This document shows, one piece after another, positions 429 to 52,716 of a stretch of DNA of 64,000 nucleotides. The position numbers were made by a program, and so were the translations under genes. This DNA is from Bugula neritina. Its lineage: Eukaryota; Animalia; Bryozoa. The stretch covers positions 10,426,581 through 10,490,580 of the forward strand of contig OZ037767.1 of the NCBI GenBank assembly GCA_964035545.1, given 5' to 3'. The notes below the pieces were generated by a model. It was not told the origin of the DNA and made no database searches. It saw only the letters and a list, made by a program, of their open reading frames with translations. Position 1 is the first letter of the stretch, and each line of letters begins with the position of its first letter.

Positions 429-1660
429 ACTAATTATTGTGGAAGCAGAACAGCAATTTGTGGACGCGATCTTTTAGTATAAATGCAATTCTGACTAGAT
501 GTTGCAGTCTAAGCAGTTCATTTTTTAGAATTTGGAGTTGCTGTTCCAATTAGCTACAAATTTGCAGTTTTATTATGGCAAATAGATAATACTAGCTGAT
601 AGCTAAAAAACTTTATGCCAAAGTGTGAATTACAAATGAAGATTAAAAAGGACACATGTAAATTTTATTATAGTTTATTATTGTATATATTATTTTGATA
701 ACATTAACAAAAATAGCATACCTTCATAAAAGATAAAACACTATACATGATAACATAGGGGGAATAGAGTGCTGATATATAACGTAAAGTCTCTATCAAT
801 AGCAACAGGATTGCAGGGATATAAGTGTCAGCAGATTCTGAGATGGGTGGGTACCTGAGGTACTCGATGGTGGGGCACACATCTCAAAGGAATTTGGGCT
901 ATACACATCATTGAGTAAGAAAATGTGCTGAGCGATAAAGCAACGGATAAAAGGGTTAAAACTGAGATCATAGAAAATTGAATTTGTGTGTTTAATGGGG
1001 CCATTGGCATATATATAGCTGTTTCCAAAGCAAAAACTGCTACATTGCTATGAATACTAGATTTAGGAGTGAAAAATAAATACAAGGTTTGTACAAAGTA
1101 ATTTACATTCAACTGTACATCATTGTCATACAATTATCTAACCGACTCTAAAAACAAATTAAAAAACTGGGCGTGTTGTATAAACAGCGAACATACATCA
1201 GCGAACTAGTATCCACTGGCAAATTATGAGCAAGATATTGCATATATGGATGAGCAAACGGCATGTTGCATTTGATGAACTGTCCAGTGTGTACAACTAC
1301 ACTAAACAGTATGGAGCACTCAGCAAAATATTCTTATTTATAATACATGGAGTTAAAAACCTTACCCAAGGAATATAATGTACAGCACCAAATGCTAACG
1401 TTAACTGTTTATGATAGAAGGTAAAAAGAGGGGAGCATAACACCTGGAAATATTAGACCACTGGAGGGACCTCAACTGACTGGGCTGAGATCTGAACTTG
1501 GCAAGACATATTAAAATATAACAGCACCTAATACTAAAATATGGAGCAATAATCTCTATAGAATATTCAGTTTTTTTTCTCACTAACCACAAAGTTAAAA
1601 ATACTCAGGAAACAGTAATATGATATAAAGTGATAAAACAACGTATGATGGTGGAGCCGC

Positions 1661-4600
1661 TTATTCTTTCAGAGGATCTCCAAACAATTTGTTTAGAATG
1701 GAGTTTCTTCGTCTTCCAGGATTAACATTTTCAGCCGTTTCTCTGCTATTTCCTCTAGTTTCTCTGCGGTCAACATTCTGCTGTTGCACCTGTTGCTGTA
1801 ATAGAATTGGTACAAGGTGATTGTCACACAGTGAGTACATAGAAACTGCAAGGTGATTGTCACACAGTGACTACATAGAAACTACAAGGTGATTGTCACA
1901 CAGTGAGTACATAGAAACTGCAAGGCGGTTATCACATAGTGACTACATAAAAACTGCAAGGTGGTTATCACATAGTGACTACATAGTAACTACACAGTTC
2001 ACAAAAACATGGTATAGTATTCTATTATATCAAATGGTGGTCTGCATCTTCTCCCACTTTACACCCATTTCCTATTATTACTCAATACACCCGATATTCT
2101 AGTACACAGAAAGGCCAAGGGTCCTATGGTTACATGGTGCTAGAATAAATAATATCCTGTTCATATGTTTCAAGACATTTAGCCCTCCTATAATATTATT
2201 ATGGAATATATTATGTTTTACAAAACGCAATGTTGGTTTATATTAACTAGTTTCAAGGTCTCTATAGCCAAGTAGAGGAAGGCTTAGTTTGAGAGCCACT
2301 AATGACTTATGAATCACTCGGATAAGTACCTAAGCAGTGGAGATCAGTTCGAAGGTAAGGGGGGTTAAATCTACCCCCAAACATTCCCTGCTAGTAGGTT
2401 AGTAGACTGAAGGGTAGAGATGTTGAATATAAAGCTAGATTCCCTTTAAATTTGTTTGATTGTAAACATTGCACAAGTTAGGAGTATGTCTGTATCATAG
2501 ATACGACCACTAGAACTTTGCTAAAGTTGGGGATTAAATTTTCCACTTTTAAATAAAACTTATAACTACAAGCTTTTTTCAAACTATATTGCCATTTAAA
2601 ATTGTAGTTTGTTACTTTTACCAATTGCTTAATACTTCATAATCATTTACAAAATATAGAACATTTTAGTATATTCAGTGATTATTTTGTTTATTCTGTA
2701 AATTGATTACTTTTTAAATTTGCTATAGCCTATTGTATGTGAACTCATGCTTATACAATGGTGAATATACCAACCATCAGGTTATGCTGGTTATGTCGTC
2801 TTCTAAGGCTCAAAGCACAAAACTCATCCGAGATGTCCCTCAAACTGGTTCCCATCTGCCTCAAAGTGTAAGGGGAAAGGAGGGCACTCTCTGACAAAGC
2901 CCGAGATCTCAATCCTCCACGTGGAACTACATCAGGGAGGGGCCCAGTGACATTTGCCATCTGTCCATCAGTGCCCTGCACTAAACACAGCATAGAACTA
3001 ATAGAATACTCAGACTAACACTTGGATGGGGGGGGGGGAGGGGGGAACTCAGATCTGCTATGATATAGAATATGAACCTGAACTGAGTTTGAATCTCCAG
3101 TTACATCTAAACAAATTATAAATAGCTTCAAAAGAAAAAAAAACTGGGAAGAATGAAACACTAAACTGGATGTGCTTGTTCGAGCTTGAAATAATAACAG
3201 TGATAATAACAAAGCAAGATGAATATTCATGCACTGGATTGTTTTTCAGATTATGATTCGTACTGCTTATTGCTGATTCAATTAAAACTGGCTTACAGAT
3301 AATGAGTAACTCATGACGTAAAAAGAAACTACATATGACATAGTTGGGAAATTTGTAGTCATGACTGGGAAATTTGGCTATTTAGGAAGTTTTATTATAG
3401 GCTGGCTTTTCCAAGTTCCATGTAGTATTATATAAGCTGACCTTCGACCTTATAGTCAGCCAGCTCTTCCATGCTTCTAAAATTAACTGGGCCAATTCCA
3501 ACTAATAATTTCAACACTTTTGGCAGAGTAGGCCTACATATAACTGAGCTAATTACTAAAACAAAACACCCCAATACATTGTGAGCCCAGCTTCTGATAC
3601 AACCACTAAAGTACTATGATTATTTCTACTACAGCTTTTTGTTTTTACAAGTTGTGGCAGACATGAATAAGATGGCTGCTGACCTACTCTAATATAGCAG
3701 ACATGATGCATATCATTACACTAAGATGCAGTGTCAAATTATTTTCCCCAGGGTCACACACTATTACCCCATTATTAGGCTGTTAAAGCCCAGTGTGTGA
3801 AGTATCTACCGAATCTTCACTACTGACATCCAGGGCTCAGCTAAAAGACAAGCTGCCTCATTACCAACAGCTTTCAGAGTAAAGATTACCCTTAATACAA
3901 AGTCTGTTGTTATATGCAGGTGCCTCTAAGTACGTGGCCCATAAAATACCCTTTCAAAGTATATCTCAGAAAAATCAAACTAAACTGAATTTGGTGGAAT
4001 TGTCAACTACTACAGTTGACTGTAGATTTTACAATTAACAATTTGGGTAAACAGTGTTTTTCCAGTTACTAATATCTATAATGAAGCAGTTTCCATAGAG
4101 CTGGGCTAATAACCATAGGCAACTTCAGTAAAATTTAATAAGTGGCTATACAATCTCCTTTTAAGAATATTATACTTATATTTTGAGCTACAGTGGTGTG
4201 ACAGGGTGTTATATTAGTGTGTGTTAAAATATATGCAATTATGCTGAGGTGTTCCAGTCTGCAGGATAATCTGACTGAAGCAACTATTAAGTTGTTTGTA
4301 TTGAAAGGAAGAAGAGAGATGGAGTTATTAGGGAGGCAGGCTAGTAGAGGGAGTGGGATGGGGGAGGTGAGTAGAGGGGTGTGGCTAGTAGAGGGAGAGA
4401 GGGGTGTGGCTAGTAGAGGGGGTGTGGCTGGTAGAGGGGGTGTGGCTAGTAGAGAAGAGAGAGCCAGCAGAAGAATTGCCAACTACTAGTGACAGAGCTT
4501 TACATCTGTGTGCCAATAAGCATCACATTATATATTACTGTATAGAATAATGTTTTGTTAATATTTTGGCAGATGACCAGAGAGATTGAAAATCTTTGTT

Positions 4601-7600
4601 AATTACAAAAGGCAAAGTGCCTTTTGAGCAAAATATTGCCATGGTGATGTGTCACGGAAAATTAATTTATCAGTTTAGTGCCAAAGCTATGATCTGTCAT
4701 AAACTTTAAGTAAAAACTAGTTTATGACAGATGGGGTTTAGAAAATATAGAAAAGCGTCATAGATTTATACAAATAATTATATAATACTAGAGCGTTTAA
4801 TTTAATCCTTAAATATTACATCCATCATTCTTCAACAGAGATAGTAAACTTCTTAATTGAAAAGCTTAAAGCCTACATTAACGGACCAATACTATGTTAG
4901 TTACATGCAATAAATTGTAGTGTATTTCTGTGTGCCAACTGTTGACAAGCATATCCTGTGCTATTAATAAACATCAAAATACAAAAACTACATGATTTAT
5001 ACACAACTGCTTTCTATTAAACTACTTGCAATGAATTTCTAATTATAAAACAACTTTTAGTAGTATCACGCTATAGAGAAATGCAAAAATATCACAATTA
5101 CCGCAGTCATAGTTGGCAAAGTGCCATACAAAACAGAGAAATCCTGTCCCTTATCTGAGGCGAGATAGTAACTGTGGAGAGAGAGTTCAATGTTAGAGAT
5201 ACTGCAGAGAATTAGTGGGTTCAGCATTACCTCATTTACACATATATCTACACACAGCCTACTGTATTCACACATGTTGACAAACTCACACACTCTGTTA
5301 GTTAGTATTCAACTGCGGAAAAACAAGCAAAACAGATGAGAATTCAAAAACTTTGAACCTACTTCTGCCATATCCTGAATGTGGCCTCTCTCCGTGTGTG
5401 TCTCCCATCACAGTCTGCCTTCGGGTCAACAGAGAATGAGAAGCTGCGGTTGGAGCAGAGGCGGCAGCAACAGATACAGGAGCAACAGCGCCCTCGCCAC
5501 TGAGGCAACTGTGGGTGACAGCAGACCATTTGCGTGGTATGTCTATAGGACTGCTGGTCGGGCTGTCATCATCTGCTAGTTCTATAATCAGAAGAGAAGA
5601 GTATTACATCCACCACTGACTGTCCAACCACTCAATGGACATCAGCTGAGGATTAGCTTCCATCTGGCAACTTGCCAACTCAGAATATTCAGGAACTGGG
5701 AGGCAAGAAGACACACTCTGGTCACTGGTCAGACTGAATATCCCAGCAGCTACACTGACCTGACAAGCTAGTGCTGCCAGTGAGATATATGACACCTAGC
5801 ACACCTGGCAGACACCTTGCATAGCTGTCAGAAGCAGCAGGTACTATTTCGGCAGCTGCTGACACAGCATAGTGAAAGCCACCAGTCAATATCTTAGGTG
5901 GCAGGAGTTGTGGTTTAATAAACCAGAGAGGTGATATAACAGACATGTATTATATAATCACTTCTGTATACCACATGATTATACCATAGCCAAGTGTAAA
6001 AACTTATTGCTGGCAGGCAGCCAAGATAGGAATAACAGCTAGAAGGACACGAACTACAGGATCCTACCCTATACACCTAGTCCCTACCTACTCTACACCT
6101 AGTCCCTACCTACTCTACACCTAGTCCCTACCTACTCTACACCTAGTCCCTACCTACTCTACACTTAGTCCCTACCTACTCTACACTTAGTCCCTACCTA
6201 CTCTACACCTAGTCCCTACCTACTCTATACCTAGTCCCTACCTACTCTACACCTAGTCCTTACACATATAGCAACTTGTTTTGTGAAATGCAGTTAGCTG
6301 ATAGTATGGAAGCAGGCAATTAGTGCATTGTTTGATAATGCCAATAGCCATAACAACTCTACTATTTTTGTTCAAATGAACTCTAATTAACTCTAAGTGA
6401 GCATAAACAGGAACATTATTGGGGTCAGCTAGTAGCGTGCTGGAGGGAGGAGTCAAACAGCTAGTGTGTACTGTGTAGAGTAGAGTTCATCTGCAGCTAA
6501 CAGAGTTCATCTGCAGCTTACAGAGTTCATCTGCAGCTTAGGGAGTTTATCTGCAGCTTACAGAGTTTATCTACAGCTAACACGAGATCATATAACATGT
6601 AAATTGATGGCCAACACTCACTAAACTCTGCAGTGACAAACTCCTCCCCTTCCTCAGTTGATGAGTCATCACCGTCAGTGCAGGTGCTGGGGGTGTGGTC
6701 ACTGAGCTGACTCATCTCAGAAGTGTCGTACTCTAAACATTCAACAAGGCAATGTCAAGGCTACAGCTGATATACTGAACTGTGACTTAGTAGCAGTACA
6801 ATACATTCAAACATGCATCCCACCAGTGGCAGTTCCTTGCCTCAATTGTTATACAAATATAATGACCAAGTAAAAATATATAAAAAAAACTTTGAAGTAT
6901 ATATTGTTTATAGCCCTGCCCCCCACTTGGTATTATTTAGTCATAGTAATTCACTCCATTAACTGCTATCAATAGTAGATGATTATATAACTAATAATTG
7001 TATAACCCCAGTCATGCAGAAGGGTGCTACTCCGATTTGTTCACTGTTTTTACAAGTGTTCACTCGAGCATAACGAGCACATGCGACTACGTGACAGCTG
7101 ATTCTTATCGTTGTACTAGACAGCTGTATTATATGGCGTGACCTGGCTAACTAGTAGCCATGCCGTGCGAAGTGTGTGCAGACGACAATTGCAGCCATAG
7201 TAATGTAAACTTGTCCGGACACGTTGAAGTGGGCCAGTCTGGTGCCTAGACCAAGAATTGATTATGTAAGACTTACCACCAGAATGGATGCCAAAACTCT
7301 GTATGCCAGAGTCGACAAATACATCATCATCGTCTTCTGCACAAGAGTCTGTATCGTACCTAGCAGTTGGCATTTCTTCCATGGATAAGTGACTGGCCTG
7401 GTGGTCGGTGGACTGATCACTCTACAGTACACATACTATAATATAGTACTACCACTACTACTACTATTATTACTACTACTGCTACTACTACTACTGCCAC
7501 TACTAGTACTACTACTACTGCTACTACTAGTACTGCTACTACTACTTCTACACACTACTACTACTACTACTACTACTGCTGCTAATACTACTGCTAATAC

Positions 7601-8570
7601 TACTACCACTACCACCACTACTACAATTAAGTACTACACGCAAATATTTACACCATTTTCTACATGATTACCAAATCTTATTATATCTTTAAACTTTCAA
7701 AATGAACTCACATGAACTCACAATCTTTCAAACTCATTCTGCTACTTCCTAATAATACTTTTATACCAAATCCATTGGGCTGATTGATTTCTGGTTACAG
7801 GCCAGAGTATGGGTCTACCCACAATCCCCTTCCCAAACAAGTTCTTAGATGTCCAGATTTAATATGTTAATTGTTGGCAAGTGTTCATTTGTTACTCACT
7901 CCACCAAGCTATAATTGTTATCACTACGTAGTTATACCCTACTGCTTTACAAACTGCTATTGCAAGAAACGTAAACATTATTTCCAAAGCCATTGCTTCA
8001 TTTTTCAACCAAATTTCTAAATACTTGGGCATGAAGTAAATAATCATAAACTAACATACAAGTTAAATGACTGAACGTAGGAGCTACTAGTAAACTGGCA
8101 ATATGCCAAACTGGTGTATTAAAAGTAAATGAAGTCAGAGAAAAACCCACTGAGCAAGTAGAGAAGCAATTAGCCTGTCAATAGCAACAGCCAGGTGCAG
8201 CTGCGAAAACAAAAAGGGTGACACTGCCATGCTGTAGCTGAATCAACAGAAAGGTGTTTAAAATTAGCTCCAGACACACACTTTTAACACGACTGTGATA
8301 TAATATTGCTAGAGTAACCAACTAATATACATCCAGCAGTTAATATGCAGTATATTGAGACCATGTTGCACCCATCTCTATAGTTACAGTATGATTTATA
8401 ATTGTAGAAAGTTCTAGACTATCTGAGCATTTGATTACCCACAAGCAAAGATATGATGATAGCCTTAATTCCTACGGTGACTAGCTACTTACCGGAGGGG
8501 TGCTGTGCACTGGATAAGTAGAAGAGATAGATTCACCAAACAAGAACCTGTCTACCGGAGATTGCGCCAT
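1661..8570 (-). CDS. BH3-only pro-apoptotic protein, BAD-like (~297 aa, 6 coding exons)
   Basis: Exons 8570-8493, 7421-7277, 6732-6622, 5581-5363, 2980-2775, 1795-1661. All introns are GT-AG and phases are consistent (0,1,1,1,0), total 894 nt. The start lies in an ACCATGG Kozak context. Exon 5 encodes GLRSRALSESALLSPYTLRQMGTSLRDISDEFCAL, compared with human BAD [28 protein letters not shown]. The rest is low-complexity and acidic/Ser-rich. Confidence 0.75.
1812..1990. repeat. ~39-bp minisatellite (~4.5 copies) next to the last acceptor of the BH3-only gene
   Basis: Unit ~caaggtgattgtcacacagtgagtacatagaaactg. Confidence 0.85.
4325..4465. repeat. G-rich degenerate tandem repeat (ggtgtggctagtagaggg)
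   Basis: Visible repeated ~18-bp unit in an intron. Confidence 0.7.
6066..6260. repeat. 22-bp minisatellite (tacacctagtccctacctactc) x~9
   Basis: Directly visible. Confidence 0.9.
6482..6582. repeat. 20-bp tandem repeat (agagttcatctgcagcttac) x~5
   Basis: Directly visible, ~40 bp into the intron after exon 3. Confidence 0.8.
7446..7624. repeat. (TAC/CTA)n trinucleotide microsatellite
   Basis: Directly visible; accounts for the poly-L/T/S/V ORFs. Confidence 0.9.
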
Positions 8571-11500
8571 GGTAGCAGTAGCTGGAGAGCCAGTGTAACA
8601 CCCGCTGTCCCTACAAAGTGTCTCACTAGATTAAGGAAAGAGAGGGGCAGTGAAGATGAACAAATTGATACTGAAGATGAATCACTTCGACTGACACAAT
8701 CAGTTAATAATGTAGTTATCACAAATACAATGCAAATAGAAATGATCATTAATAGAACATAATCACTACTCCCCAGGCATGACCTGGGTTGACCCCACCA
8801 AGCCAAGGCAAGCCCGAAACCCCTTAGACCTGTAATTATAAGTTGTTGACAAACACTTGATAAAACAATAGGTCTTCCCCAACCACACTCCACACCAGCC
8901 ATCACCTGACTTCACCATACCTGACTACCCCATACCTGGTTACAGGTCTGTCATCAATTTTGATGGCTTTTGGGAGGATTCCTTTAGGTTGCGTGCACTT
9001 TTTACCAGTTTGACCTGAAGAATCGTTGTATTCTTTTGGCATTCCAGCAGATGCCATAATATCTACAGTATTAAAATGGCACACTGCTATATCAACTGTA
9101 TATACAATATTACAATGGCACCCTGCCACTGTAGCTATATATAGTAGTATAATTTGATGTTGCAAATTACACTAATGATACATTAAATGCCCATTAGTAC
9201 ATCTAACAGCACTTTACAAGATGATAAAAATTCAGCAAAAAAACGTTGTTGTAAAACATATTCAGTAAACTACAATCACGCACAGATAAGTGGTTAGGTA
9301 AAATGATCACTTATGATAATTATTCCCTCCTTAATAACTTACTAGCAATGGTGGCATTAACAAAAATAAGCTACATTTTACTGTATAAATTGCACCAAAA
9401 GCATTTCATTAACTGTGCGTGGCTTGTTAACCATGTCACTTATATTAGACTGGTAAGTAAAAGCAGCAGGTAGTTCTTTATTCTATAATAAATACTGCTA
9501 CACTTGTCTTTGGACCCTGGCTAATCTATATTTATGAGTCTAAGCTCATATCAAATGCTGTACAAATACTATGATTACAATGCATGATGCAATGCTTACC
9601 TGAGTACAGATTATTATGTGTAGTTGAACTATCAAGACTCTACTTGAATGTGGACCACACTTCGGCTCAATCTACAAATTAAGTGCTGTGATTATATAGT
9701 AAGGAGTGCTACACCTGACTTTCACCACTCAAAGCTAATTACATTGTTGAATGAGCAGAGATTAGAATGTTAAAATAAATCCCTGACACACTTCATTTTT
9801 GCAGTATTAAAATATTTATATAAGAATATATCTTAGCTATCATCTAATACTGAGGTCGGCATACTTGGACAATTTTGTTTTCTAAGAAATTTCATGCTCA
9901 TGCTAATGATGTTTCTGTTTGCATTGGAGTTGGTGATGTTATAAAACTAATAGTAGTTATTACTAACTTATATAATACCACTGACTATACAGCTAAACCA
10001 AACATTATGAGCATGAACACAGAAATTATTATAAGAGACAATCATTTGAGCATACAAACCTCAGTTTGTAGATGATAGCTAAGATATACATGAATATTTT
10101 AGTGATACATAAATGAAGTGCTTCAGGGATTCATTAGATTAAAACAAGAGAAATTACTAGCAACACAAAGACATGGCTGAACTGCTTTTGTAAACCAGTG
10201 ATAATGTAAAGACCCAACATATTGCCTGTGATAACTGAGCAGCTATCAACAAAATCTCTTTAGCGATGGAGGCTACAAAATCAGATTAACTCACCAGGCA
10301 AAGAAAGAAACTTCTAAAAAAGGGGTGCCAAGTCGTTTGATATACTTGAAGTTTTACTTCATTCAATTTGCTGATAAAGTAAGAATCTACTTTGCAGTCT
10401 CTTTGGTGAGATCTGTCAAATAAACATTGTTATAATAGTAGAAAAAGACGACATTATCATTTTGATAATGACCCAAAAGAGGTTAAAATTGAAAGCATTA
10501 TCGTAAATGGGTGCAAGACCATTTTCGAAAGCAAGTTCCTTATTTTCAATGTTGGGCTTGACTAATACTTGAAAAACTAAATTACGAAGTGTTAATAGTT
10601 TCCACTCTAAGATATCACTTTTCATAAACAAAGTTGGCTAGTATGAAATTACACAATTGAAATATAACAGAAATTACTCGAGCCTAAAATGACTTGATTC
10701 AATATAGTCGTGAAACTAATAGCTTTTGCAAAAAGGTGGCTTTTCAATTTTAGTGTATGTAGATTTCAAGTTGGTAGATCAAAATGGACTCCAATTGTTT
10801 ATTCACACTATGACTTGCTATGAAAATTACCCAAGGCATTACAGAAGATTATTTTATTTAGTCGAGTAAAATAGTAAATACAAAAATGTAAACATAAGTA
10901 AACATAGACTACACCCCTCCATCAATTACTAAAACCCCTTGATCTAAACCTAATGCTTAGGAAGCATTATCTTATTGTTATTTATTTCCGTGGTCTAAAT
11001 CATAATTATAATACTTGCAGCAGAATTCAAAATTAAAATAACCATTTATTGTCTTATTGGTATTCATTATATTTTAAACCACATTGTGAAGTTTGAACAA
11101 ACTGGTATGATAAAACTAACATTGTAGGTACTACAGCTCTGTTGCAATGCCACTCTTATATTTTTACTTTGTGACGTACAGCTAGTGTTACAGCTACTAT
11201 GATCATCGCTATCAGCAAAACTGTATTCAAGAGTAGCAGTGTTACATTCTTGCAATTAAATTCTGAGTCAATAGATTATAATGCTAATCCTAGAATAACA
11301 ATAACTAATAAGTATTTGTAATACTAATAGCAATGGCAATTGCCAATTGTATTTGTACTAAAAAAACTCAATAGACTTAAACTGAGTCTCCTGACTATCA
11401 CCATTACCATCATTACTCCTTAGAGTTACAGTTACTCTTTCTGTTAGTTGAACCAAATAGTAAATCAGAATGTAACAATAAACTACCAAGACAATAACGA

Positions 11501-12223: not shown

Positions 12224-12402
12224 CACGTGATATGGAGTGATACTGGGCGGGCGAAAGTTTACTGTTGACTCTGTACGTTTGCGTTCTGTCGTAGGGACCA
12301 ATAAAATAACGCGTGATAATGAGTGACCAATAAAATACAAATGTCAAGTTTGTTATTACTTAACGGAATTTCCATGCTAAGCAAGCATGCCCAAACACGT
12401 TT
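12224..12402 (-). promoter_or_regulatory. Putative promoter of the BH3-only gene: E-box, GC/E2F-like box, twin CCAAT boxes, kB-like and p53-like elements
   Basis: CACGTG 12224-12229; GGGCGGGCGAAA 12245-12256; GACCAATAAAATA at 12296 and 12325 (29-bp spacing); GGAATTTCC 12365-12373; AAGCATGCCC-AAACACGTTT 12383-12402. Local CpG enrichment. A candidate non-coding-exon donor (gtaagt, - strand) lies at 12016-12011. Confidence 0.5.
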
Positions 12403-39100: not shown

Positions 39101-42100
39101 TTTAGCAAAAACTATTTCTAAGGAAAAGAAGAAGTTATAAAACTAACACATTTCGGCATACCACCCTGAAGTTGTATTTAACTGATATTCAAGATACATG
39201 TGAATAATTTAATACTACATAGATGTAGCGTGTTCGAGATTCTTCAGGTAGACCTGCTGATTTTGAAATGACTTTTGTGGGCAGTGTTAGAGTGTTAGTA
39301 ACATACTGTAGTGATAGTAACATACTGTAGTGATGGTAACATACTGTAATACAGGGAGTGGGACGAAGCTCTACTAGAAGAAGCTATCAAGTGTCTGAAA
39401 GAAGATCTCCCATTGGCTGATGGAGCCCCTGGTGGTATGATAAACTACCGCAAGACTTTAACCATCAGCTTTTTCTTCAAGTTCTACGAGACAGTAAAAT
39501 ATAGAATATCTAAGTTACAGGTAGCTACAGGTTCTTTGCAATAGTTCTTATCTAGACTCTAGAGTGTTCATGTCCTGTAATAATGGTGGTGAAAGACAAA
39601 AAACAAATGCACGAATGTTCTCTCATCTACTCTAGTGTATTTCTGTTAGATAGTTATCTTCAATACTAATCAGGAAAATTTTATCTATATGCTGACATCA
39701 CTTTGATATTTTAGTATTGATCATTCTTCTAATTTTACCAAAATTTAGTACATTTTTTATTAAGACTATCACAATAAGTTCGCTTTCTGTCAACTCTAGT
39801 GCTTAACTGTAGTCCTTATCGGTCCCAAAATTCAATTCCAAGATTTTAATTCAGATAGATGTTCAATTATTTTTCAAAAGTAGAGTTTAAAGGCTTCAGT
39901 TTTTGCAAAATGAAACCGAGAATAAGCTAACTAATATAAAAAGTGGCCAAATGAAAAGTATTTGGGAAAATTAAAAATATTAACAACATTTTACCTGCAA
40001 CGCATCTGGTAAACTCATGTGAAATTGCTAACCACTTTTAATGTTGCTAGGCTAAAGAGTGTACTGAATGTAATGTTGCAGAGTTCTGAGGAGAATGGTT
40101 CAAAGCCAGACTTGAGTTGCATTGAGAGGCTGGAAAGAGGACCAACAAAAGGTATTCAGATCTACCAGGAGGATACAGAGAATGCGTCTGCTTGTTGGAA
40201 GGCTTTGCCAGCTCATTCGGCTGAACTTCAATGTAGTGGAGAGGCTCAGTATGTTGATGACCTGCCTACATACACAGGTGCTTACTTACTCTACATGTCA
40301 TAAAATTTCACTCACTTGCTCTACATGTCATAGGGTCTTGCTCACTTACTCTACATGTCATCAAGTATCACTCACTTGCTCTAGGTGTCAAAATATTACT
40401 CACTTTCGCTACTTTTCATAAAATGTCACTCACCTGCTCTACATGTCATCAAGTATCACTCACTTGTTCTATGTGTCATAAAATATTTCTCACTTGCCTT
40501 ACGTGTCTAAATTTTTTTTATAATTTAATAAATGGTTTACATCATGACAAATTTTATACTAACTCTAGAGCTTCAATGATTGTAGACGAGTTGTATATGG
40601 CTCTGGTGTTTAGTTCAAAGGCTCATGCTAGAATACTTTCGATTGATACCAGGGAAGCCATGAAGTGTTCAGGTGTCAGGAGTTGTCTCACTGCTAAAGA
40701 TGTGCCTGGCAGTAATAACACTGGTCTATTTGGTGATGAGCTCATATTCGCAGCAGATGAGGTGAACACTTGTTATACATTTTTTTACTGGATGAATAGA
40801 GTTATGTTCTCATTCACTTGATCCTTGTAATTCCATGGTAATGTATTCTCTCGTTTTCGTTTTCAGTCACTGATTGGTAAGCTCAATGAGTCTGGTTCGC
40901 TAATACTTCTTCTCTCACAAACAACATCTACAATGACTTTTAAATTTATTTTAAAATAATGTTCAAGTCAAAATCTCACATGTCTATCATTAGCACTAAT
41001 TTGGACACTGCATGTCTTGGTAAAACCAACCAAAGCACTGAAATGGATAAGAATTTTTCTTATCAAGTAGGCAACAATTGGTACTGTTGAAATTGAAAAT
41101 CTTAGTTAGTTCAAGACTAGTAACTAATAACTATTTCAGACAAACCACAACTTTAGTTGGAATGCTAGACCATCAAATGTTCTAGCATTGATCAGTTTAG
41201 ACAGTCACCCGAATAGGTTTCAGCTTAGTTGGAGTTCTTATGATTAGTTAATTGGTAAATATCAAGAGGACAATGCACTTGGTGAATCATTCACAAAAGT
41301 ACAGCAGATTGTAATAAAATAATCAACTGATTTTCATGAGAATTTTTTACTTCTGCTGTTCATTAGCAAAAATGTAGTCAGTATTCTTATTTAAAGCACT
41401 TGTCAGGGGCTGAGCCAGTTATATTTTATTTGGTGTATCCTCATTAGATTAAAAACTATACAAATAGGGATATAGATGAAATATTATTGCACTTAGTTAT
41501 AAATTTCTTTTTCTCTTTTCTCACCTGAAATTCTGCAGTCGTGTGTGGGTAGCTATAGTCTATTAATTATAAATAATTTGCTTAGTTTTACTTTTGTAAT
41601 TAAATCAATAAACCTATAAATAAATAAAGCTTTAAATATTTATAATAGGTAAATATTTACTAAAGAATGATCATAATTACTGTATTAATAAATGGCATTA
41701 CGTCATTAGATGATAAGGTTACTTGATGCTAATGGTCTGTGGGAATGCAAAGATGAAATTAATACATGGACAGCAAACATTGATCAGTTGAGACTATTCT
41801 TTGTTGACGTGACTATGACTATCATCCTATCTCTTAGATATATGTAGATCTAACCCTAGGCAGTAGTGAAAGTGATGAAATCAAATTTAAATTATATTTT
41901 AATTATGAAAACTATGCATATGGTGTCCAGTTTAGTGATTTTTTAATATTTAATTAAAACTTTGGTGCTGGTAATGCATTAAGTAGTTACTCAACTATTA
42001 TTGTAGGGTCTTTGGCCAGCTTAGGATATGACATCATCGTTTGCAAAGGGTATCAGTACTATCAACATCTTACTGCTATCAATACTATTTCATTATTAAA

Positions 42101-45100
42101 ATTCAACTGAGGTTTATAACTTTACATATAAATCAGATCTAATGCAATAACACTGACTATGTTATCAGTATAAGGTGCCAGTTCCATATGTTTAATTCTA
42201 ATTTCTTCAGGTACTTGTCTGTGCATGCTATACACTCTTCTCAGTAGTTGTCTACCCTCTGTCCTCATCTATTGTCTACTCTACTCTAGCTTTACTCATT
42301 GTATGTATGTGTTGGACTCTTTCTAATCTCTCACTTTACTACCTCCTACACAGGAGAACTCCTCTAACCTAACGGCTCACTCGATTGTATAGGTTTATAA
42401 GTGAGTTGAATATACGCAGTAAGAATAATTGAAGTTGCATTACTAGTGTCCATGTTGTAATAATTTCAGCTTTATTTCAGAATTACTAAAGCGAGTCTCA
42501 TTAAGTGCCATGTGACAAAACAGTGGAGTGTGTAACTGGGTGGCTGGTATCTGTACAAACCTATTCAGCAGAGAATCCCATCTTCTGTTTCAGGTGACTG
42601 CACACGGTCAAGTTATTGGGGCGGTGATAGCAGACTCGCAGAGGCATGCTCAGCTAGCTGCTAAAAAGGTCAAGGTTGAATACGAGAACTTGCCTGCCCT
42701 CATTACTATCCAGGCAAGTTTCGAGATTGTGAATTTAACAATACATTTATTGATATATTTTAAAGCCTTATATGGATATTCTCGTATTATTATCATAATG
42801 TATATAGGAAAATATTTTATAGGAAAAATTCAATATTGTAAGTTGTCTTAATATAGGTTTTAAAAATAATGGCTAGTTTATTTACATTTTTTATGTTAAT
42901 AAAATGTCTAATGTGGTCAGTTACCATGTTTGTTTGTAAAACACTCAGTTTTCAGTTGCAGTTTTAGTATCTCTAACAAATGTTTACATAAATTTACAAA
43001 ATGATTGTGAGTGGTGGACTCATTCAGGATGCGATCAAAGCGAATTCGTTTCATGGTGATAGAGTGTTGGTGAAAGGAAATGTTGAAGAAGGATTCACTC
43101 AGGCCGAGCATATTCTCTCTGGAGAGATCAGTGTTGGGGGTCAAGATCATTTCTATTTGGAGACCCATGTATGTATGTATGTATGTGTATGTATGTATGT
43201 ATGTACATGTATTTATGTGTGTACGCATGTATGTATGTATGTATGTATATGTGTGTATGTACGTATGTATGTATGTATGTATGTACGTATGTACGTATGT
43301 ATGTATGTACGTATGTATGTATGTATGTATCTATGTATGTATGTATGTATGTATGTATGTATGTATGTATGTACGTATGTACGTATGTATGTATGTATGT
43401 ATGTATGTATGTATGTATGTATGTATGTATGTATGTATGTATGTATGTATGTATGTATGTATGTATGTACGTATGTACGTATGTATGTATGTATGTATGT
43501 ATGTATGTATGTATGTATGTATGTATGTATGTATGTATGTATGTATGTATGTATGTATGTATGTACGTACGTATGTACGTATGTACGTATGTACGTATGT
43601 ACGTACGTGTGTACGTATGTATGTGTGTATGTGTGTACGTGTGTACGTGTGTATGTGTGTACGTGTGTACGTGTGTATGTGTGTACGTGTGTACGTGTGT
43701 ACGTGTGTGTGTGTGTATGTGTGCGTGTGCGCGCGTGCGCGCGTGTGCGCGCGTGTGTGTACATGTGTGTACATGTATGTACATGTATGTATGTGTGTTC
43801 GCGCGTGCATGTGTGTATTCATATGCATGTGTAAGTATATGTGTGTGTATGTGTGTATGTATATATATATATGGGCTGCTCTTGTGTAGATTTTCAATAT
43901 TTTAGTGTTTTGCAAGTTATATTTAGAGTAATAGTGTGGTGTATTTGTACATATATCAACATTGTGTATATATCTACACTGTGAATATATTTATCACGTA
44001 TGTATGCATTGTGTATATGTATTCGCAGTCTGTTCTGTGTGTACCACGTGATCACGGAGAAATGGAAATATTCAGTTCTACACAAGACGTCTCTCTCGTA
44101 CAGTTTGCTGCTGCACGAGCTCTAAACGTTCCATCAAACCGAATACACGTTAGAACAAAGAGATTAGGTATGTATTATGCTTTATACTCACTTGAGTACG
44201 TGATATTTAAGTGAAACTTAAAGTTTTAATATTTGATCTCTGTGGTAGTTATCTTACGCTGCATCACTACACGTTGACATTCTCACAACCTCTCAACCTT
44301 TGTTATATAAACACACATTGAATGGTAGAAAGCTCAACCAATCGGATAAATTAAAGCTTGTTTATTTCTTTTCGCTTTGCTTTTAAGGAGGGGGATTTGG
44401 AGGAAAGGAGTCCCAATCAACTTATCTAGCCCTGCCCGCCGCTGTAGCTTGTCGCAGGTATTTGATGACATAAATGATAGCTGAAATATTTATATGATTT
44501 GGTAGAATGTTTATACAAGCTATAGATAACTTTTATACGAGCTAGGTAGATTGTTCACGCAGTTTCATAAAATGGTTATACGGCGTCATTGAATGATTTT
44601 GCAGCTTTTATGGAATGTTTTTTATGACTTATTGAATGGTTATATGTAGTTCTACCCAATAGGCACGAGGTACCTATAAGGTGTATGCTAGACAGAGATG
44701 AGGATATGATTATTACTGGAGGGAGACACCCTTACCTGGCCAAGTATAAGGTATAGATATAGAGTATACTGTATAGATATAGAGTATAGTGTATAGATAT
44801 AGAGTATAATGTATAGATATAGAGTATAATGTATAGATATAGAGTATACTGTATAGATATAGAGTATAGTGTATAGATATAGAGTATAATGTATAGATAT
44901 AGAGTATAATGTATAGATATAGAGTATAATGTATAGATATAGAGTATAATGTATAGATATAGAGTATACTGTATAGATTTAGAGTATAGTGTATAGATAT
45001 AGAGTATAATATATAGATATAGAGTATACTGTATAGATATAGAGTATAAGGTATAGATATAGAGTATACTGTATAGATTTAAAGTATAATATATAGATAT

Positions 45101-48100
45101 AGAGTATAATGTATAGATAAAGAGTATAAGGTATAGATATAGAGTATAATGTATAGATATAGAGTATAAGGTATAGATATAGAGTATAATGTATAGATAT
45201 AGAGTATACTGTATAGATTTAGAGTATAGTGTATAGATATAGAGTATAATATATAGATATAGAGTATACTGTATAGATATAGAGTATAAGGTATAGATAT
45301 AGAGTATACTGTATAGATTTAAAGTATAATATATAGATATAGAGTATAATGTATAGATATAGAGTATAAGGTATAGATATAGAGTATAATGTATAGATAT
45401 AGAGTATAAGGTATAGATATAGAGTATAATGTTTAGAGTGTAATGAAGTAAAGCGTATAGAATATCATCTATGATGTAATATCCTGTGTATAGCGACTGC
45501 TAATCTTTTAGGTTGGCTTCAACTCTGATGGTAGGATCATAGCCTGTGATGTCCAACTATACAGTAATGCGGGCAACTCTCTTGACCTCTCCATAGGTGT
45601 AAGTGGTGAAACTGGTCACTAATATTCCACACTATGTTACTTATTACAAAGCTTTTATATCCAAGTTACTAGCTAGCAGTGATCAGTGAATGGTATATAT
45701 TTGGCTCTAGTTTAACTGGTTTTTATTTCAATTCTACATGCATAGTTATATTGGCTGGCTGTTGAGTCACCCAATTGTTTTGAAACACTTATAGATGTAG
45801 AACTTAGGCTAAACAGAAATGCCCTTACTCAAGTTACTTAGCACCTTGTGTCAAGAGTGACTCAACTACGAGCAGCCCTGGGTTGGGTAGACATATATGC
45901 TTGTGTTTATTTAAACTGTGCAGGTGAATGACAGGGCGTTGACGAGTATAGACAATGCCTATAACATCGCCAACATGAGGGTTCAAGGTTGGATGTGTAA
46001 GACTAATATATCCAGTAACACGGCTTTCAGAGGGTTTGGTGGTCCGCAAGGCATGTTTTTCATGGAGCATATCATTTCAGAAATATCCTCCAAGCTGAAT
46101 ATGGAAGATTCTAAGGTTAGGCTTGCTATGTATGTTAGGTGGGTGTGTTTCACATGGTTATTGTAATACTGTGGTACATTATGTTAATAACACTAGTAAT
46201 ATACTGGTGTGTATGTACGTTATGTTAGTATTGTAGTAGAGCTTGTGTTGTCGTGTGTATATATCCAGTATTGACGTCTGTATACACCAGCTGTTCTGTA
46301 CTTCCGTGTTATAGTTCTGCTATACTGGTCTTATTATAGCAGACCTATTCTACTGGTCCTATTCTGCTGGACCTACTTTACTGGACCTACTATAATGGTC
46401 CTACTGTTTTGACTTTAATTTACTACTTAAACTGTTCTGAATGTACAGAACAGGGCCTACAATTTTGGGCCAATACCACCCGACTGGAAGTACTGGGCCT
46501 ATTCCACCGGTTGGTCCACCCTAATATGTACTTTCAGATACGAGAGATGCACCTGTACCAGGAAGGCGACTGCACCCACTACAAACAACCCATCATAAAC
46601 TGTAACATCTCCAAGTGCTGGCAACAAGTCCTTCAGCAAAGTGACTATGAGACGCGAAAAGCTGAGGTCATCAAATACAACAGGTGGGTGCAGCTTATCT
46701 AATCGCCGTTATTCTCTAAAGATTAGCAGACGTCTTGATATTGGTTTGAAACGTGTCGGTGTGTATAATGTAAAAGCATGGTTCTATAAGCAGCTTCGAG
46801 CTGGGGGTGAATAAGTGCAGTAATTTGGGGTTTTCGAACTTGGACTTGGGAGACTAACTCCAAACTTGAGAACCACAAACTACTGCACTCAGTCACCCCC
46901 AACTCGAAGCTGCTTATAGAACCATTCAACGTAAAAAGTGTTGAAAAAATAGTTGGAGAACTGTAAAGGTGGGAGATTACAAGGGGGAGCGGGGTTGGAT
47001 TTAATAAACCATCTTCCCTACTGATATTACTACTAGCAACTGTGACAAAGTACCCTCAACAACATGTAGTACTAACTAGGAGTCTTTTCTTATCTGCGGT
47101 TAAAATTTAATTGCTAGAAAGACTGCAAACTTTAATGAAAACTTGACTTTAGCTGTAAATTTTTGTAGCCAAAACCGATATAGAAAGAGGGGTATTTGTG
47201 CTATGCCCACAAAGTTTGGAATTGCGTTTGGTGTTGCTTTTCTAAACCAAGCCGCTGCTCTCGTGCACATATACAAAGATGGGTACGTGCTCTTGTCACA
47301 CGGAGGTATAGAGATGGGGCAGGGCGTCTTCACAAAGATGATACAGGCTAGTAAACTCTATTCTGTCATACATTTTGTAATCCATTCGGTAATGCATTCT
47401 GTATTCTATAATATATGGTATTGTGCAAGACCTTGCTTGTATAAAATTGTATTCTGCTTTATATTGTATTGCACTGTATATACTATATATATTGTAGTAC
47501 GCTGTATATAATATATTACTGTATATAGTAATACACTGTATATAGTAACGTACTGTATATAGTAATACACTGTATATAGTAATATACTATATAGTAATAC
47601 ACTGTATGTAGTAATACACTGTATATAGTAATATACTATATAGTAATACACTGTATGTAGTAATACACTGTATATAGTAATAAACTGTATATAGTAATAC
47701 ACTGTATATAGTAACACACTGTATATAGTAATACACTGTGTATAGTAATACAATATATATAGTAATATACTGTTTATAGTAACACACTGTGTATAGTAAC
47801 ACACTGTGTATAGTAATATACTGTATATAGTAATACACTGTATATAGTAATATACTGTTTATAGTAACACACTGTATATAGTAATACACTGTGTATAGTA
47901 ATATACTATATAGTAATACACTGTATATAGTAATATACTGTATATAGTAATACACTGTATATAGTAATACAATATATATAGTAACACACTGTATATAGTA
48001 ATACACTGTATATAGTAATATACTGTTTATAGTAACACACTGTGTATAGTAACACACTGTGTATAGTAACACACTGTGTATAGTAATACACTATATATAG

Positions 48101-51100
48101 TAATATACTGTATATAGTAATACACTGTGTATAGTAATACACTGTATATAGTAATACACTATATATAGTAATACAATATATATAGTAATACACTGTATAT
48201 AGTAACACACTGTATATAGTAATACACTGTGTATAGTAACACACTGTATATAGTAATACACTGTATATAGTAACACACTGTGTATAGTAATACACTGTAT
48301 ATAGTAATACACTGTGTATAGTAATACACTGTATATAGTAACACACTGTATATAGTAATACACTGTATATAGTAACACAGCTGCTCTACTGTTACACCAC
48401 ACTACAATGCATACTGCAGGTGGTAAGCAATGCCCTAGACATACCAGCTAGCAAGATACACACCATGGAGGTCTCCACCACTACTGTGGCCAACACTTCA
48501 GCCACAGCTGCTAGCACTGGCTCCGATCTTAATGGTGCCGCCATATTGGTACGTTCTTGTATAGGTGTTCTTCTACGTAAGCCTTGGCTCATATTATTGA
48601 GATGTACCCAAGTAAAACTAGTTCTACTAGCATGTTATTAACTAGAAGTCCTTGCTTCAAACTCAATTGAGTAGACTATTAGTATTAGCATTCACACATT
48701 GAAGAGAGTATGTTGGACATCCACAACTGAGATACTATGTAACATCCAATCACATCATCTTATACAGTGTAGCATCCAATCAAATCATGTAATACAATGT
48801 ATCATCAAATCATTTGATACAATGTAACATCAAATCATGTTGTGTAAAATTGTGTGACGTCCAGTTATATGATATAATACTATGTGATATCCAATCATAT
48901 TTTAGGATGCCTGTGGAAAATTGAAAGAGAGGTTAAAGCCATTTGTGGACGCTAAACCGGATGGTAAATGGGAAGATTGGGTCAATGATGCATACTTTGC
49001 CAGAGTTTCTCTCTCAGCCACTGGTTACTACGCGTGAGTCACCTCTTTGTTTCCTACTTCCTCTCCATTTTCATTGGTCGCATTTGTTGTGGTGATTAAC
49101 CAAGTTTAATACGTGTCTTCCCTATTTAGACTGAGTGCTTTAGGTTATGAGCCCTGGTAGTACTTATTGGTGGTAAGCTGAGACTATTGTTATTCTAGAA
49201 CTCCAGACCTGTACATGGACTATAGCACAAGCACTGGTACACCGTATGCCTACTTCAGTTTCGGTGCTGCTGTGACGGAGGTAGAGATAGACTGCCTTAC
49301 CGGTGACCACCAGGTTAGTGTAGAATCTCAGTCTAAAGTTCACAGCACCTGCAACACACCTGCTTTACCTCATCGCTGCTTCGGTTGAGAAAGAACTTCT
49401 ACCGCAGATATGCTGCTGCCAGCTGCTAGACGAATATGTTTGAGTGGCAGCGGGTTTTACTCCTCAGCACTTATGAAAAAATATTTTAATTCAACTTTTG
49501 AAGATCTCTTGCAAAATTTCAATTGATTTCAACATGTATTTGCTAAAATCCTACTGTAAATAGACTCTTTTTTATACAATATCAAACGTTTGTTGTTTAG
49601 ACCACATGCTACAGTCTTTAGGAGCTTATGTATCGTAAGTTGATGGAGAGCCTGAGTTTTGGTAGAGGATTACATGGGTTATACATGTGACGTAATTTTA
49701 TAAACTGTGTAGAATTATCTTTCCTTGCTCAAAGTGCATTCTGTGTTGGCAGCTCATAAAAACCGACATCGTGATGGACGTTGGGAAGAGCTTGAACCCG
49801 GCCATTGATATTGGACAGATTGAGGGGGCGTTTGTTCAGGGATACGGCTGGCTGTGCTTGGAGCAGCTTAAGGTTGGCTTCTTTGATCTCTTCTTACTCT
49901 CTCTAATATAGTGTGTGTGTGTGCGTGTGTGTGCGTGTGTGTGCGCGTGCGCGTGTGTGTGCGTGTGTGTGCGCGTGCGCGTGTGTGTGTGTGAGTATAT
50001 TATTCTATAATAATACTGTATTATCAGTAATATCATATCAGTAATACTATATTATCAGTAATATATCACTACTACGTATTCCGCAACACAGATGATGGCA
50101 AGCACAGGCACTGCGCTAACCTGTGGCCCAGGGAACTACAAGATCCCAGGGTTTAGTAACATTCCGCAGGAGTTCAACGTCACCCTTCTCAAGGATGTTC
50201 CTAATGTCAAAGCCGTTTACTCTTCTAAAGTAAGATAATCACAAATTTTATTATTTTTAATGCCCAAAGTTATGCACTTTTATGGTGCTCAAATTTTCAA
50301 CTTCAAAGTGTGCTGTTGAACAAACCTCTCCTAACAAGCTTTTGTTAAAGAATCCTTGACACACTTTATTTATGCAGTATTAAAATATTCCTATATAATT
50401 TAGCTATCATCTACACACTGTTTTAGGGTTGTTTTATTTTATAATAAATTTTGTGTGTTCATGTGCAGAATCAGTTTAGAATCTTTGATTGCTTGTTAAT
50501 GACGTTTTCAGTTCAAAGTTCAAACTTTTAAGCCAGCTCAGTGATAAGCCGTGTGTTTTAGCAGCTAAGAACAGCAAGCAAAAAAGTTGGCAATAATTAT
50601 TATTATTTTTATGATATCACAGGCTTCAGCACCGACTGGAGACTTCATCAGCAAGTGATGAGATATCCCAGAGTGATTCCAACATGTTTGCGTAAAATCT
50701 ATTATAAAGCAAACTTGTTTGGGCATGCGAACCTAAAACAGCCTGTAGATGATGGTTAAAATATATGTAAGAGTATTTTAATACATGGTAAGTGAAGTGT
50801 GTGAGGGACTCTATCAGGAAGTTATGTAATATTATTAATATCTATGTCAGGCTGTTGGTGAACCACCTTTGTTCCTGTCGGCATCAGCTTTCTTTGCCAT
50901 CAAGTCAGCGGTAAAAGCAGCGAGAGCCGAGGCTGGAGAAGATTTGAATTTTATCCTCAATGCGCCGTGTACTCCCGAGAGAATCAGAATGGCCTGTGTT
51001 GATAGACTGAGTAGTGAGGTGAGCAATTCTACATGTTATATAATCGTATGTGTGTTATGTTGTATAATATTCACGCTGTATGTTATTCTAATTGTGATAT

Positions 51101-51256: not shown

Positions 51257-52716
51257 GCAGTTTATCGAAAACCTTGGAGTTCTTTTTAGAATATATTTCT
51301 AACTATAAATTTTATAACTAAATTCTTTTAATATTTCTATACACTTTCAGGTAATATCACTAATATGTTTTAATATTTCCAAAGATGATTTTATTGAAAT
51401 GCATTTATTATAACTTTTCACAATATTGGAGCTTGATTTTATATTCAATTTTTTTCTATAACTTTATATTGCCGATTTAGTAACTTACTGAAAGTTATAT
51501 TTCTGTATGTCTTTACTTCAATGGTCTATAATACGTGTTCTATCCAAATTTTATTATTTACCTTTATACATATATGACAGAGAGGGCGATTATCTTAATA
51601 AATGGTGCAAACTGCATTTGTACATTTTTGCTTTTAGTTTTGGTTTAAAATCCCTTGGGACTTTGCTAAAGTTTGTTGATCAATTGATACTAGTATCTAT
51701 TTCACTCCAAAGGAATTGCTATACTGAACTTATACCGTAAGGCAACACTTTTGAGCTAATCCAAGATTTCTAACTAAGCTTGAGATCTTTATTCGGTCTA
51801 ACAAAGATGGGGGTGGGGTGAAGTGACTAGATAAAGGTTCGGCAGCACTTTGTCAGCATCTGTTACCCACCAGATGTACACTTTCCAGTAAACTGAAGAT
51901 AAAATTAGTGGGCAAGCCATGATTAGTGATCTTAAACTCCTGTCAAGCATTCTAGAACCCAACAAAATGATGAAGGCAGAAGTTATTTTCTGTTAATGTT
52001 TGATGGTTATGTGGTATATTGAAGAACTTAAAGTAATTGAAGAAAATGTTATTTGAGTCATGCAGTGATGATACTGTAGCAATTGGAGATGAAGAGAAGA
52101 ATCCTAAAAAGTACAGGTCTGCTCGAAGCATGTATATTGTGTGTTTTAACTTTCACCCATCATAAGTGTATAGTTTACCTCGAAAGAAAACTGTTGACAA
52201 CTTGCTAAATAAAAACTTGTACTAACTTTTGCATGACAATTATAAACTTTTCCTGGTGAAATGTGTCAGCAGTTATTCTGCATATTGCACATTTTAAATT
52301 TTCAGCTTTTCAACCTCTTGAGGAGTGCATTGCATCACAATAAATTTATTGCCATCAAAGTTTCGTATTTTCAAAACAGTTATAGTAATTTTCAAACTTA
52401 CATAAAGAGATTATTCATGTTACAGTCTAGAGTCTAGACATATGAGCAAACTTTGAAAAAACTTCACAGAGCTTATGGTTCTATTATTAAACTTTTAGCA
52501 AATATAGTTATATTGTAAAGAATCTGTTAATCTACTTAGTATTGTGAATTGTCTACAAAAAACATCAAAAACAAGACATGGTTAACTTGTTACAGCACTA
52601 ATCCAAAATCCAACAATTCCATATAAAAATAAATATACAACAATTGTGTTCAACAAAACCAGATGAAAAAATACATGACAACAAAAATTTCTGTTAATTA
52701 TTGGAGTAAATGGAAG

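Follow-up and report, generated by a model that had tools for sequence, protein, structure and literature searches.

BH3-only proteins are stress sensors of mitochondrial apoptosis. They are poorly catalogued because only a short motif is conserved among them, and the known members come almost only from vertebrates, nematodes, a few flatworms, Hydra and, since 2023, Drosophila (PMC8998228, PMC10107002). A stretch of 64,000 nucleotides (nt) from the genome of the bryozoan Bugula neritina (contig OZ037767.1), referred to here as the window, raises the question of whether a protein of this kind is also encoded in Bryozoa and, if so, whether it is BAD. An earlier analysis of the letters alone (the sequence-only reading) had joined six exons of this window into one gene and had taken the product for a kinase-gated BAD orthologue or analogue. 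We consider it slightly better than an even chance that the locus is a single-copy gene of a cheilostome bryozoan with seven or more exons and an intrinsically disordered product of ∼300–350 amino acids (aa), and that this product is a lineage-restricted BH3-only protein with a BAD-like motif grammar, regulated by basophilic kinases and phosphodegrons.

A conserved BH3-like motif, its predicted helix and its possible partners

Single exons or the full-length orthologue from Watersipora subatra served as protein queries. With exon 5, which carries the BH3 motif, an exhaustive HMMER search of 1.84 billion representative proteins gave four matches, two of which are true relatives: XP_067942067.1 (P0001), a protein of 346 aa from W. 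subatra (Bryozoa, Cheilostomatida; E 2e-6), and a third species, represented by a cluster (P0002) of open reading frame (ORF) fragments on two metagenome contigs of ENA (L009 and L010), on which the last exon is also present. We discarded the other two matches (P0003 and P0004), which are proteins with repeats or of low complexity. The Watersipora protein is annotated as 'uncharacterized protein', the fate that the sequence-only reading had expected for this gene. A word search with exon 5, restricted to proteins of 37–119 aa, gave no match, the same type of search with the full-length Watersipora protein returned only that protein, and none of 239 pattern matches in JGI metagenome contigs was confirmed as a relative. 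All relatives found are bryozoan, consistent with the phylum of the window, and the family is apparently restricted to Bryozoa. The Watersipora gene (L011) has seven coding exons, and the six exons of the window align colinearly with its exons 2–7, with coinciding intron positions (by pairwise tblastn; a MAFFT alignment of single exons misplaced exons 2–4 and was discarded). The third species can be compared over its last two exons only.

The BH3 motifs of the three species are MGTSLRDISDEF (window), VGSKLQKISDEF and VGSNLRDMCDEF, and the signature hydrophobic-G-x-x-L-x-x-I/M-S/C-D-E-F is complete in all of them. At 42% pairwise identity, h1 (M/V/V), the Gly, the Leu, h3 (I/I/M), the small residue (S/S/C), the Asp, the Glu and the Phe are conserved, unlike the four intervening positions (T/S, S/K/N, R/Q and D/K). 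The Leu three residues before h1 is also invariant, and SESA is separated from DEF by 18 residues in each species. This arrangement corresponds to conservation along a single face of a helix. A regular expression for the BH3 has one match when the window is translated in six frames (128,000 residues). Such a pattern is degenerate, and for this reason we place the weight on conservation and docking rather than on the motif match.

AlphaFold2, given the exon-5 alignment of three rows, predicted coil for residues 1–35 and a helix for residues 36–67. This is the sole confident helix, and ten-residue means of the predicted local distance difference test (pLDDT) peak over residues 31–60 (81, 90 and 80). 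A PF00452 search of the genome gave eight exon-level matches, which include two loci of Bcl-xL/Bcl-w type (L001 and L002) and one whose best match is BAX (Table 1). Judged by sequence similarity, pro-survival-like and effector-like partners are thus both present in the genome. A tandem pair with weaker BH1/BH2-like matches (L005/L007, C3:19925854-19931150) lies on the same chromosome-scale contig as the window.

Complex modelling, a check proposed by the sequence-only reading, combined residues 27–68 of exon 5 with the first exon of L001 (158 aa, to ...NGGW) and put the BH3 in the groove of this Bcl-xL-like protein from the same genome. Three runs scored 0.85, 0.85 and 0.86, a mark reached by 51/78 solved complexes and 2/108 mismatched pairs, versus 0.00–0.01 for three controls; this score is the model's own confidence, is uncalibrated for peptides and disordered chains and may recall solved BH3:Bcl-xL complexes. 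The runs share at least 90% of their contacts, and the pLDDT of the partner is at least 67. Confident contacts involve L34, T38–R40, M42–R47, I49–D51, F53, C54, S57 and L58 on the exon-5 side and helices 2–5 on the partner side. The four hydrophobic positions h1–h4 (M42, L46, I49 and F53) are among them, and Asp51 and Ser50 touch Arg108 of QWGR in BH1. We read the docking as a strong sign that the pair resembles a BH3:groove complex, not as evidence of binding; binding to the groove is at this stage a prediction of the model.

The three sequences were also used as a profile against 177,635 PDB sequences (E<=10), which gave four matches. Three of these are BAD BH3 peptides (6fbx_B, 1g5j_B and 9o14_B), aligned over ..G..L...SDEF with E of 0.3–0.4, values that are not significant, and the fourth is an unrelated isomerase, matched via the GPLPD region. 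These matches hint at the BAD subtype and are suggestive, not significant.

Short motifs, regulation and the relation to BAD

The sequence-only reading had described a mostly disordered protein in which the BH3 was the only recognisable motif. The disorder was borne out: 70% of the residues of the window protein are disorder-promoting and 22% are Ser or Thr, and the ESM Atlas model of the Watersipora protein (pLDDT 0.44; predicted template modelling score 0.17) is consistent with disorder. The BH3, however, is accompanied by several other conserved motifs. The window and Watersipora proteins share, in this order, DSGCYTGSP; an acidic run and DSG[IL]QS; DDSST..GEF.TAE; PIDIP; RR.TV; GPLPDVVP; R.RA[LM]SESA; 18 residues and then DEF; and a C-terminal GRRNS....LF. 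The third species keeps GPLPDVVP, R.RA[LM]SESA and the 18-residue spacing to DEF, and its C-terminus reads RRKS....IL (L009). Pfam searches of the six exons, P0001 and P0005 found no family at E<=10, and by reading no transmembrane (TM)-like hydrophobic tail is evident at the C-terminus.

Two of these motifs, common to the window and Watersipora, are degron-like (DSGxx[S/T]), and three are basophilic sites of the AGC-kinase type (RRxT, RxRAxS and an RRxS near the C-terminus). DSGxxS/T is the beta-TrCP phosphodegron consensus, whereas RRx[S/T] and RxRxxS are consensus sites of the PKA and Akt/RSK types, respectively. The RxRxxS site (RSRALS) that the sequence-only reading had placed shortly upstream of the BH3 belongs to a block, R-x-R-A-[LM]-S-E-S-A, that is invariant in the three species. 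Within this block, RxRAxS (Arg at -5 and -3) precedes the BH3 Asp by 22 residues and is without the +2 Pro of the mode-1 14-3-3 motif (BAD RSxpSxP). Two other readings of the BH3 region were dropped: DEFCAL as an LC3-interacting region, since the hydrophobic residue at +3 is not conserved in the other species, and an RVxF site for PP1, since the spacing is wrong.

In the mechanism that we propose, the helix segment M42-G-T-S-L46-R-D-I49-S-D51-E-F53 of exon 5 would enter the groove of a Bcl-xL/Bcl-w-like protein with its four hydrophobic residues, and the BH3 Asp would pair with the BH1 Arg of this pro-survival protein. Occupancy of the groove would free or activate the BAX-like effector of the genome. 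Phosphorylation by survival kinases, together with turnover of the SCF type, would probably set the activity, as is the case for BAD and BimEL. The data show a gene that is spliced and expressed, the conservation of its motifs and a predicted helix, whereas we infer a killing activity, the kinases involved, 14-3-3 binding and degradation of the candidate protein.

Several points weigh against a BH3-only protein, in addition to the limits on the docking score and the E values of the BAD peptides given earlier. From residue frequencies, the chance of the BH3 pattern is estimated at ∼1e-6 per position, which amounts to several matches per proteome, and many proteins with BH3-like motifs do not act as death ligands (PMC9171138). 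The model of the Bcl-xL-like partner lacks the last exon, which encodes the end of BH2 and the tail. The most conserved block of exon 5 is GPLPDVVP, not the BH3, and our scheme gives it no role. Finally, exon 5 found no relatives outside Bryozoa among the 1.84 billion proteins searched with HMMER, and for this reason no functional annotation can be transferred.

The strongest alternative is a disordered signalling or adaptor protein acting as a hub, whose conserved amphipathic helix would bind a partner without the Bcl-2 fold (for example a kinase, a phosphatase, or a 14-3-3-linked or ubiquitin-ligase complex), the likeness to a BH3 being coincidental or secondary. Many further conserved motifs on one chain (here GPLPDVVP, PIDIP, three RRx[S/T] and two DSGxx[S/T]) are typically seen in hub or substrate proteins, conservation is highest outside the BH3, BH3-like motifs are common and degenerate (PMC9171138), and no family model or homologue ties the protein to apoptosis. 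However, all eight signature positions, including the small residue and the Asp, are retained across the species while other positions drift. Moreover, the helix is predicted to dock in the canonical register, with the contact between the Asp and the BH1 Arg and with 0.85 versus at most 0.01 in the controls, and the only motif-level matches in the PDB are BAD BH3 peptides. We therefore regard the hub protein as a serious but clearly less probable explanation than the BH3-only protein.

If the product is a BH3-only protein, it may also be a true orthologue of vertebrate BAD that has diverged past sequence recognition, with the gating by Akt/PKA and 14-3-3 kept. This special case of the BH3-only interpretation appears to us unlikely. 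In its favour, the BH3 has the same residue as human BAD at 7/12 positions (BAD motif taken from Table 1 of PMC9171138), and the PDB profile places BAD peptides above all other BH3 peptides. The motif grammar is, at the level of sequence, BAD-like: an RxRxxS with Arg at -5 and -3, ∼20 residues, and a BH3 ending in SDEF. The Ser before the Asp is found in two of the three aligned species and is unchanged among the RNA differences listed for a sibling lineage (see later in the text; the list is partial), and candidates seeded by BAD, Bim or Bmf are 'potential' in other invertebrate phyla (PMC8998228).

However, the Pfam model Bcl-2_BAD (PF10514) matched neither the exons nor the full-length Watersipora orthologue at E<=10. 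In a six-frame search of the whole genome it gave no match at this locus, its best matches elsewhere having an E of ∼3, which is chance level. No BAD or other non-bryozoan protein was among the matches of the exhaustive HMMER search with the BH3 exon. The Ser before the BH3 Asp is Cys in the third species and the Arg at -3 of this Ser is Gln in Watersipora, so that a switch of the BAD-Ser155 type does not appear to be a feature of the family. The sole language-model lead (ESM Atlas feature search) points to a cluster containing BMF at 0.79, a value within the range of shuffled sequences that makes it a lead only; the ESM Atlas structure matches were discarded, as they are meaningless for a disordered model. 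In addition, 12 residues of a degenerate motif are too few for a claim of orthology. We do not file the protein as BAD, since there is no profile or HMMER match, the Ser and the -3 Arg are variable and the +2 Pro is missing.

The BAD orthology proposed by the sequence-only reading was accordingly not supported, and the checks that it had proposed gave a divided answer. The profile search with exon 5 found bryozoan relatives and no match to the BAD family. The conservation of LRDISDEF and RSRxxS holds for the BH3 signature and RxRA[LM]S, and fails for the Ser and the Arg that are replaced in the relatives. The BH3 motif itself came through, being kept in three bryozoan species, predicted to be helical and docked in silico.

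Compared with BAD, the bryozoan protein is likewise a disordered protein of small to medium size without the Bcl-2 fold, with a Gly after h1 in a BH3 that ends in xSDEF, further RRx[S/T] sites besides the RxRxxS and a predicted binding to a Bcl-xL/Bcl-w-type groove. Unlike BAD, to which it has no detectable homology beyond the motif, it is about twice as long and carries the DSGxx[S/T] motifs and the GPLPDVVP block, of which the BAD family model has no sign. If descent from BAD were true, a BH3-only sensor gated by survival kinases would already have existed in the bilaterian ancestor, and the DSG degrons and GPLPDVVP would be ancestral features of this sensor that were lost in vertebrates.

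Gene structure and transcripts

The six ORF pieces of the candidate BH3-only gene lie on the minus strand and join as the sequence-only reading had proposed, with AG acceptors, GT donors and consistent phases, into 894 nt including the stop (297 aa). The entry phases of the exons are 0/0/1/1/1/0 and the split codons specify E, K and M; the donors of exons 1–5 are, in order, GTAAGT, GTAAGT, GTGAGT, GTAGGT and GTTGGT. The G+C content is 40–55% in the exons versus 34–44% in the introns. A profile search of the whole genome (216 Mb) with exon 5 matched this locus alone, so that the gene is single copy and no paralogue was found by this search. The coordinates of the exons are listed in Table 1, as positions within the window.

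Table 1. Exons of the candidate gene in the window and Bcl-2-family loci elsewhere in the genome
Feature	Position	Strand	Characteristics
Tentative first coding exon	8936..9057	-	Start MAS..., 40 codons + 2 nt; from a phase- and donor-constrained scan
Exon 1, extended upstream	8493..8611 (earlier model 8570-8493)	-	Acceptor TTTGTAG/G, donor GTAAGT; DSGCYTGSP at 8609-8592, then ATG at 8570
Exon 2	7277..7421	-	Acidic tract, then DSGIQS at 7313-7296; joint 6732>7277 in RNA contigs of X1 and X2
Exon 3	6622..6732	-	Acidic, Ser-rich; DDSST..GEF.TAE; covered by RNA contigs without differences, both junctions seen; colinear with Watersipora exon 4
Exon 4	5363..5581	-	PIDIP; RRQT at 5423-5412 (PKA/AGC-type site); joint 2980>5363 exact in X1 and X2; end at 5581 in a loose end of X1
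Exon 5	2775..2980	-	GPLPDVVP at 2945-2922; RSRALS at 2909-2892; BH3 core MGTSLRDISDEF at 2855-2820
Exon 6	1661..1795	-	Gln/Arg-rich tail; RRRNS at 1714-1700, then ..LF; TAA stop; junction 1795/2775 in loose ends of X1 and X2
Bcl-xL/Bcl-w-type locus L001	G000:C4:4808381-4811677		Single long first exon ending at the conserved GGW; best PDB match Bcl-xL/Bcl-w-type, E 4.5e-21, ahead of BAK
Bcl-xL/Bcl-w-type locus L002	C5:9336936-9340226		Single long first exon ending at the conserved GGW; best PDB match Bcl-xL/Bcl-w-type, E 4.4e-13, ahead of BAK
BAX-like locus L003/L008	C4:13461837-13465177		Multi-exon; best match BAX, E 3.7e-12; exon with BH3-like LRQIGDEL upstream

The 5' end of the earlier model is incomplete. 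Upstream of the proposed ATG the frame stays open (...RDSGCYTGSPATAT-M) as far as an acceptor, TTTGTAG/G, at 8611, before which there is a stop. RDSGCYTGSP stands directly upstream of this ATG, and the second coding exon of Watersipora starts with R/DSGCYTGSP-M. The 27 nt that encode DSGCYTGSP differ from Watersipora at 4 positions, all of them third positions and 4/4 synonymous. Since the peptide is conserved and the nucleotide changes are synonymous only, this stretch is coding. Exon 1 therefore extends in frame to the acceptor at 8611, and at least one upstream coding exon with the true start is missing from the earlier model; the ATG at 8570 is probably wrong as a start, although the six exons are otherwise as described.

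A candidate for the first exon lies at 9057-8936. Its donor (CAG/GTATGG) would complete AGG (Arg) with the G at 8611, its Kozak context is good (A at -3, G at +4), and it would bring the protein to ∼351 aa, versus 346 aa in Watersipora. BLASTP gave no alignment between this candidate and exon 1 of Watersipora, and we keep it as tentative.

For transcripts, we used two metagenomic RNA-seq runs labelled 'symbiont metagenome' (X1 and X2) and a DNA run (X3) for comparison, whose contigs were placed on positions 1620-7460 of the window; junction 1/2 and the 5' exon lie beyond this stretch. Of the words sampled from the 7.1-kb stretch, ∼11% occur in X1 and X2, about the proportion taken up by exons, and 83% occur in X3. 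The contigs of X1 and X2 are 90–95% identical to the window and for this reason come from a sibling species or lineage. Word depth is ∼300–2900 in exon contigs versus ∼5–130 in intron contigs. The joints 6732>7277 and 2980>5363 are exact, with CT..AC ends. At junction 6622>5581 a 30-letter loose end at 6622 matches 5552-5581 at 28/30 positions, and at 1795>2775 loose ends match at 12/13 and 16/18 and include a T>C change by which Val replaces the last Met of exon 5. None of these joints was found in the DNA run over the same stretch. Four of the five junctions of the sequence-only reading are thus confirmed in a close relative, the fifth (1/2) falling outside the covered stretch.

The transcripts of the two runs are not identical at all places. 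In X2 the exon-4 side of junction 3/4 cannot be placed exactly because the sequence differs there, and a difference in length that keeps the frame is probable close to the exon-4 start (5533-5581). X2 also carries an in-frame 12-nt insertion just upstream of DSGIQS (window 7315). The sibling differences in exon 5, as far as a partial list gives them, are R20H, G21R, L28F, P36S and M68V, none of which falls within the BH3 core.

That the locus is no functional coding gene (a chance chain of ORFs, a non-coding transcript or a pseudogene), for which one could invoke the absence of the gene from the protein collections searched and its incomplete 5' end, is barely credible and is already contradicted by exact GT..AG junctions in RNA and none in DNA, an open frame across all junctions, conservation at the protein level with Watersipora through all exons with common intron positions, synonymous-only differences where the peptide is identical, and a single copy.

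The introns hold several repeats. The intron that separates exons 1 and 2 contains, immediately before the acceptor of exon 2, a tract of ∼200 nt with a 3-nt periodicity (ACT/GCT/ATT repeats; window positions 7440-7640). Units of ∼20–36 nt form short tandem arrays at 1820-1990, 4340-4460, 6060-6260 and 6480-6580; as an example, ctagtccctacctactctacac is repeated ∼9 times, with no obvious function seen. In Watersipora, the gene upstream of the orthologue (L011, 1-5355) encodes a large F-box/LRR protein according to weak Pfam matches.

Known BH3-only systems and the surroundings of the gene

The bryozoan protein shares features with BH3-only proteins of the BimEL/Bmf type. These are also disordered, and the level of Bim can be set by beta-TrCP, through which the phosphorylated protein is degraded (PMC12369272); control of a BH3-only protein by a degron thus has a precedent. 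One exon carries the BH3, a layout shared with the candidates of a 2022 survey (PMC8998228), and the weak language-model lead from the bryozoan protein is to the BMF cluster. In contrast, there is no sequence match to Bim or Bmf, and the hydrophobic C-terminal tail is not evident. For the bryozoan DSG motifs the reading as degrons is drawn from the motif match and its conservation.

Similarly, membership of the lineage-restricted invertebrate BH3-only proteins (C. elegans EGL-1 and those of schistosomes, Hydra and Drosophila, the last being sayonara) is defined by a short motif alone, and sequence searches fail to recognise these proteins across phyla (PMC8998228, PMC10107002). Each completes a triad of pro-survival, effector and BH3-only proteins, as the bryozoan protein would. 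However, the bryozoan protein is multi-exon and much longer than EGL-1 and its cnidarian counterparts, and its family is separate, apparently specific to the phylum and richer in regulatory phospho-motifs.

The 2022 survey reported experimentally supported BH3-only proteins in nematodes, schistosomes and Hydra, and only 'potential' candidates, seeded by Bim, Bad or Bmf, in echinoderms, hemichordates, cephalochordates and some lophotrochozoans (an annelid, a brachiopod and molluscs). It found none in sponges, placozoans and urochordates and did not sample bryozoans (PMC8998228); no BH3-only sequences are given as text in its supplement. Neither BH3-only proteins nor bryozoans were covered by a 2024 study of apoptosis in lophotrochozoans (PMC11463336), and among the best-ranked papers of a full-text literature search we found no report of a bryozoan BH3-only protein. 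The predicted groove complex and the conserved motif make the present protein a good candidate for the first BH3-only cell-death trigger in Bryozoa. If binding holds, the pro-survival, BAX-like and BH3-only triad would be complete in a lophotrochozoan phylum without apoptosis genetics, and the family would offer a testable case of kinase- and degron-controlled BH3-only regulation outside vertebrates. The multi-motif alignment could also guide searches of neighbouring phyla for hidden BH3-only genes.

Elsewhere in the window, ∼3.3 kb upstream of the tentative first exon (12365-12402), we noted GGAATTTCC at 12365-12373 and, at 12383-12392, the perfect p53 half-site AAGCATGCCC, next to which the other half, TTCCATGCTA, is a poor match to the consensus. 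On inspection of the ORF translations by eye, exons of a gene similar to xanthine dehydrogenase/aldehyde oxidase lie on the plus strand at 40000-48400, and exons of a gene similar to aromatic amino-acid decarboxylase lie on the minus strand at 52700-53730. Long microsatellites of the TG/CA and TAC types are interspersed with the exons of both.

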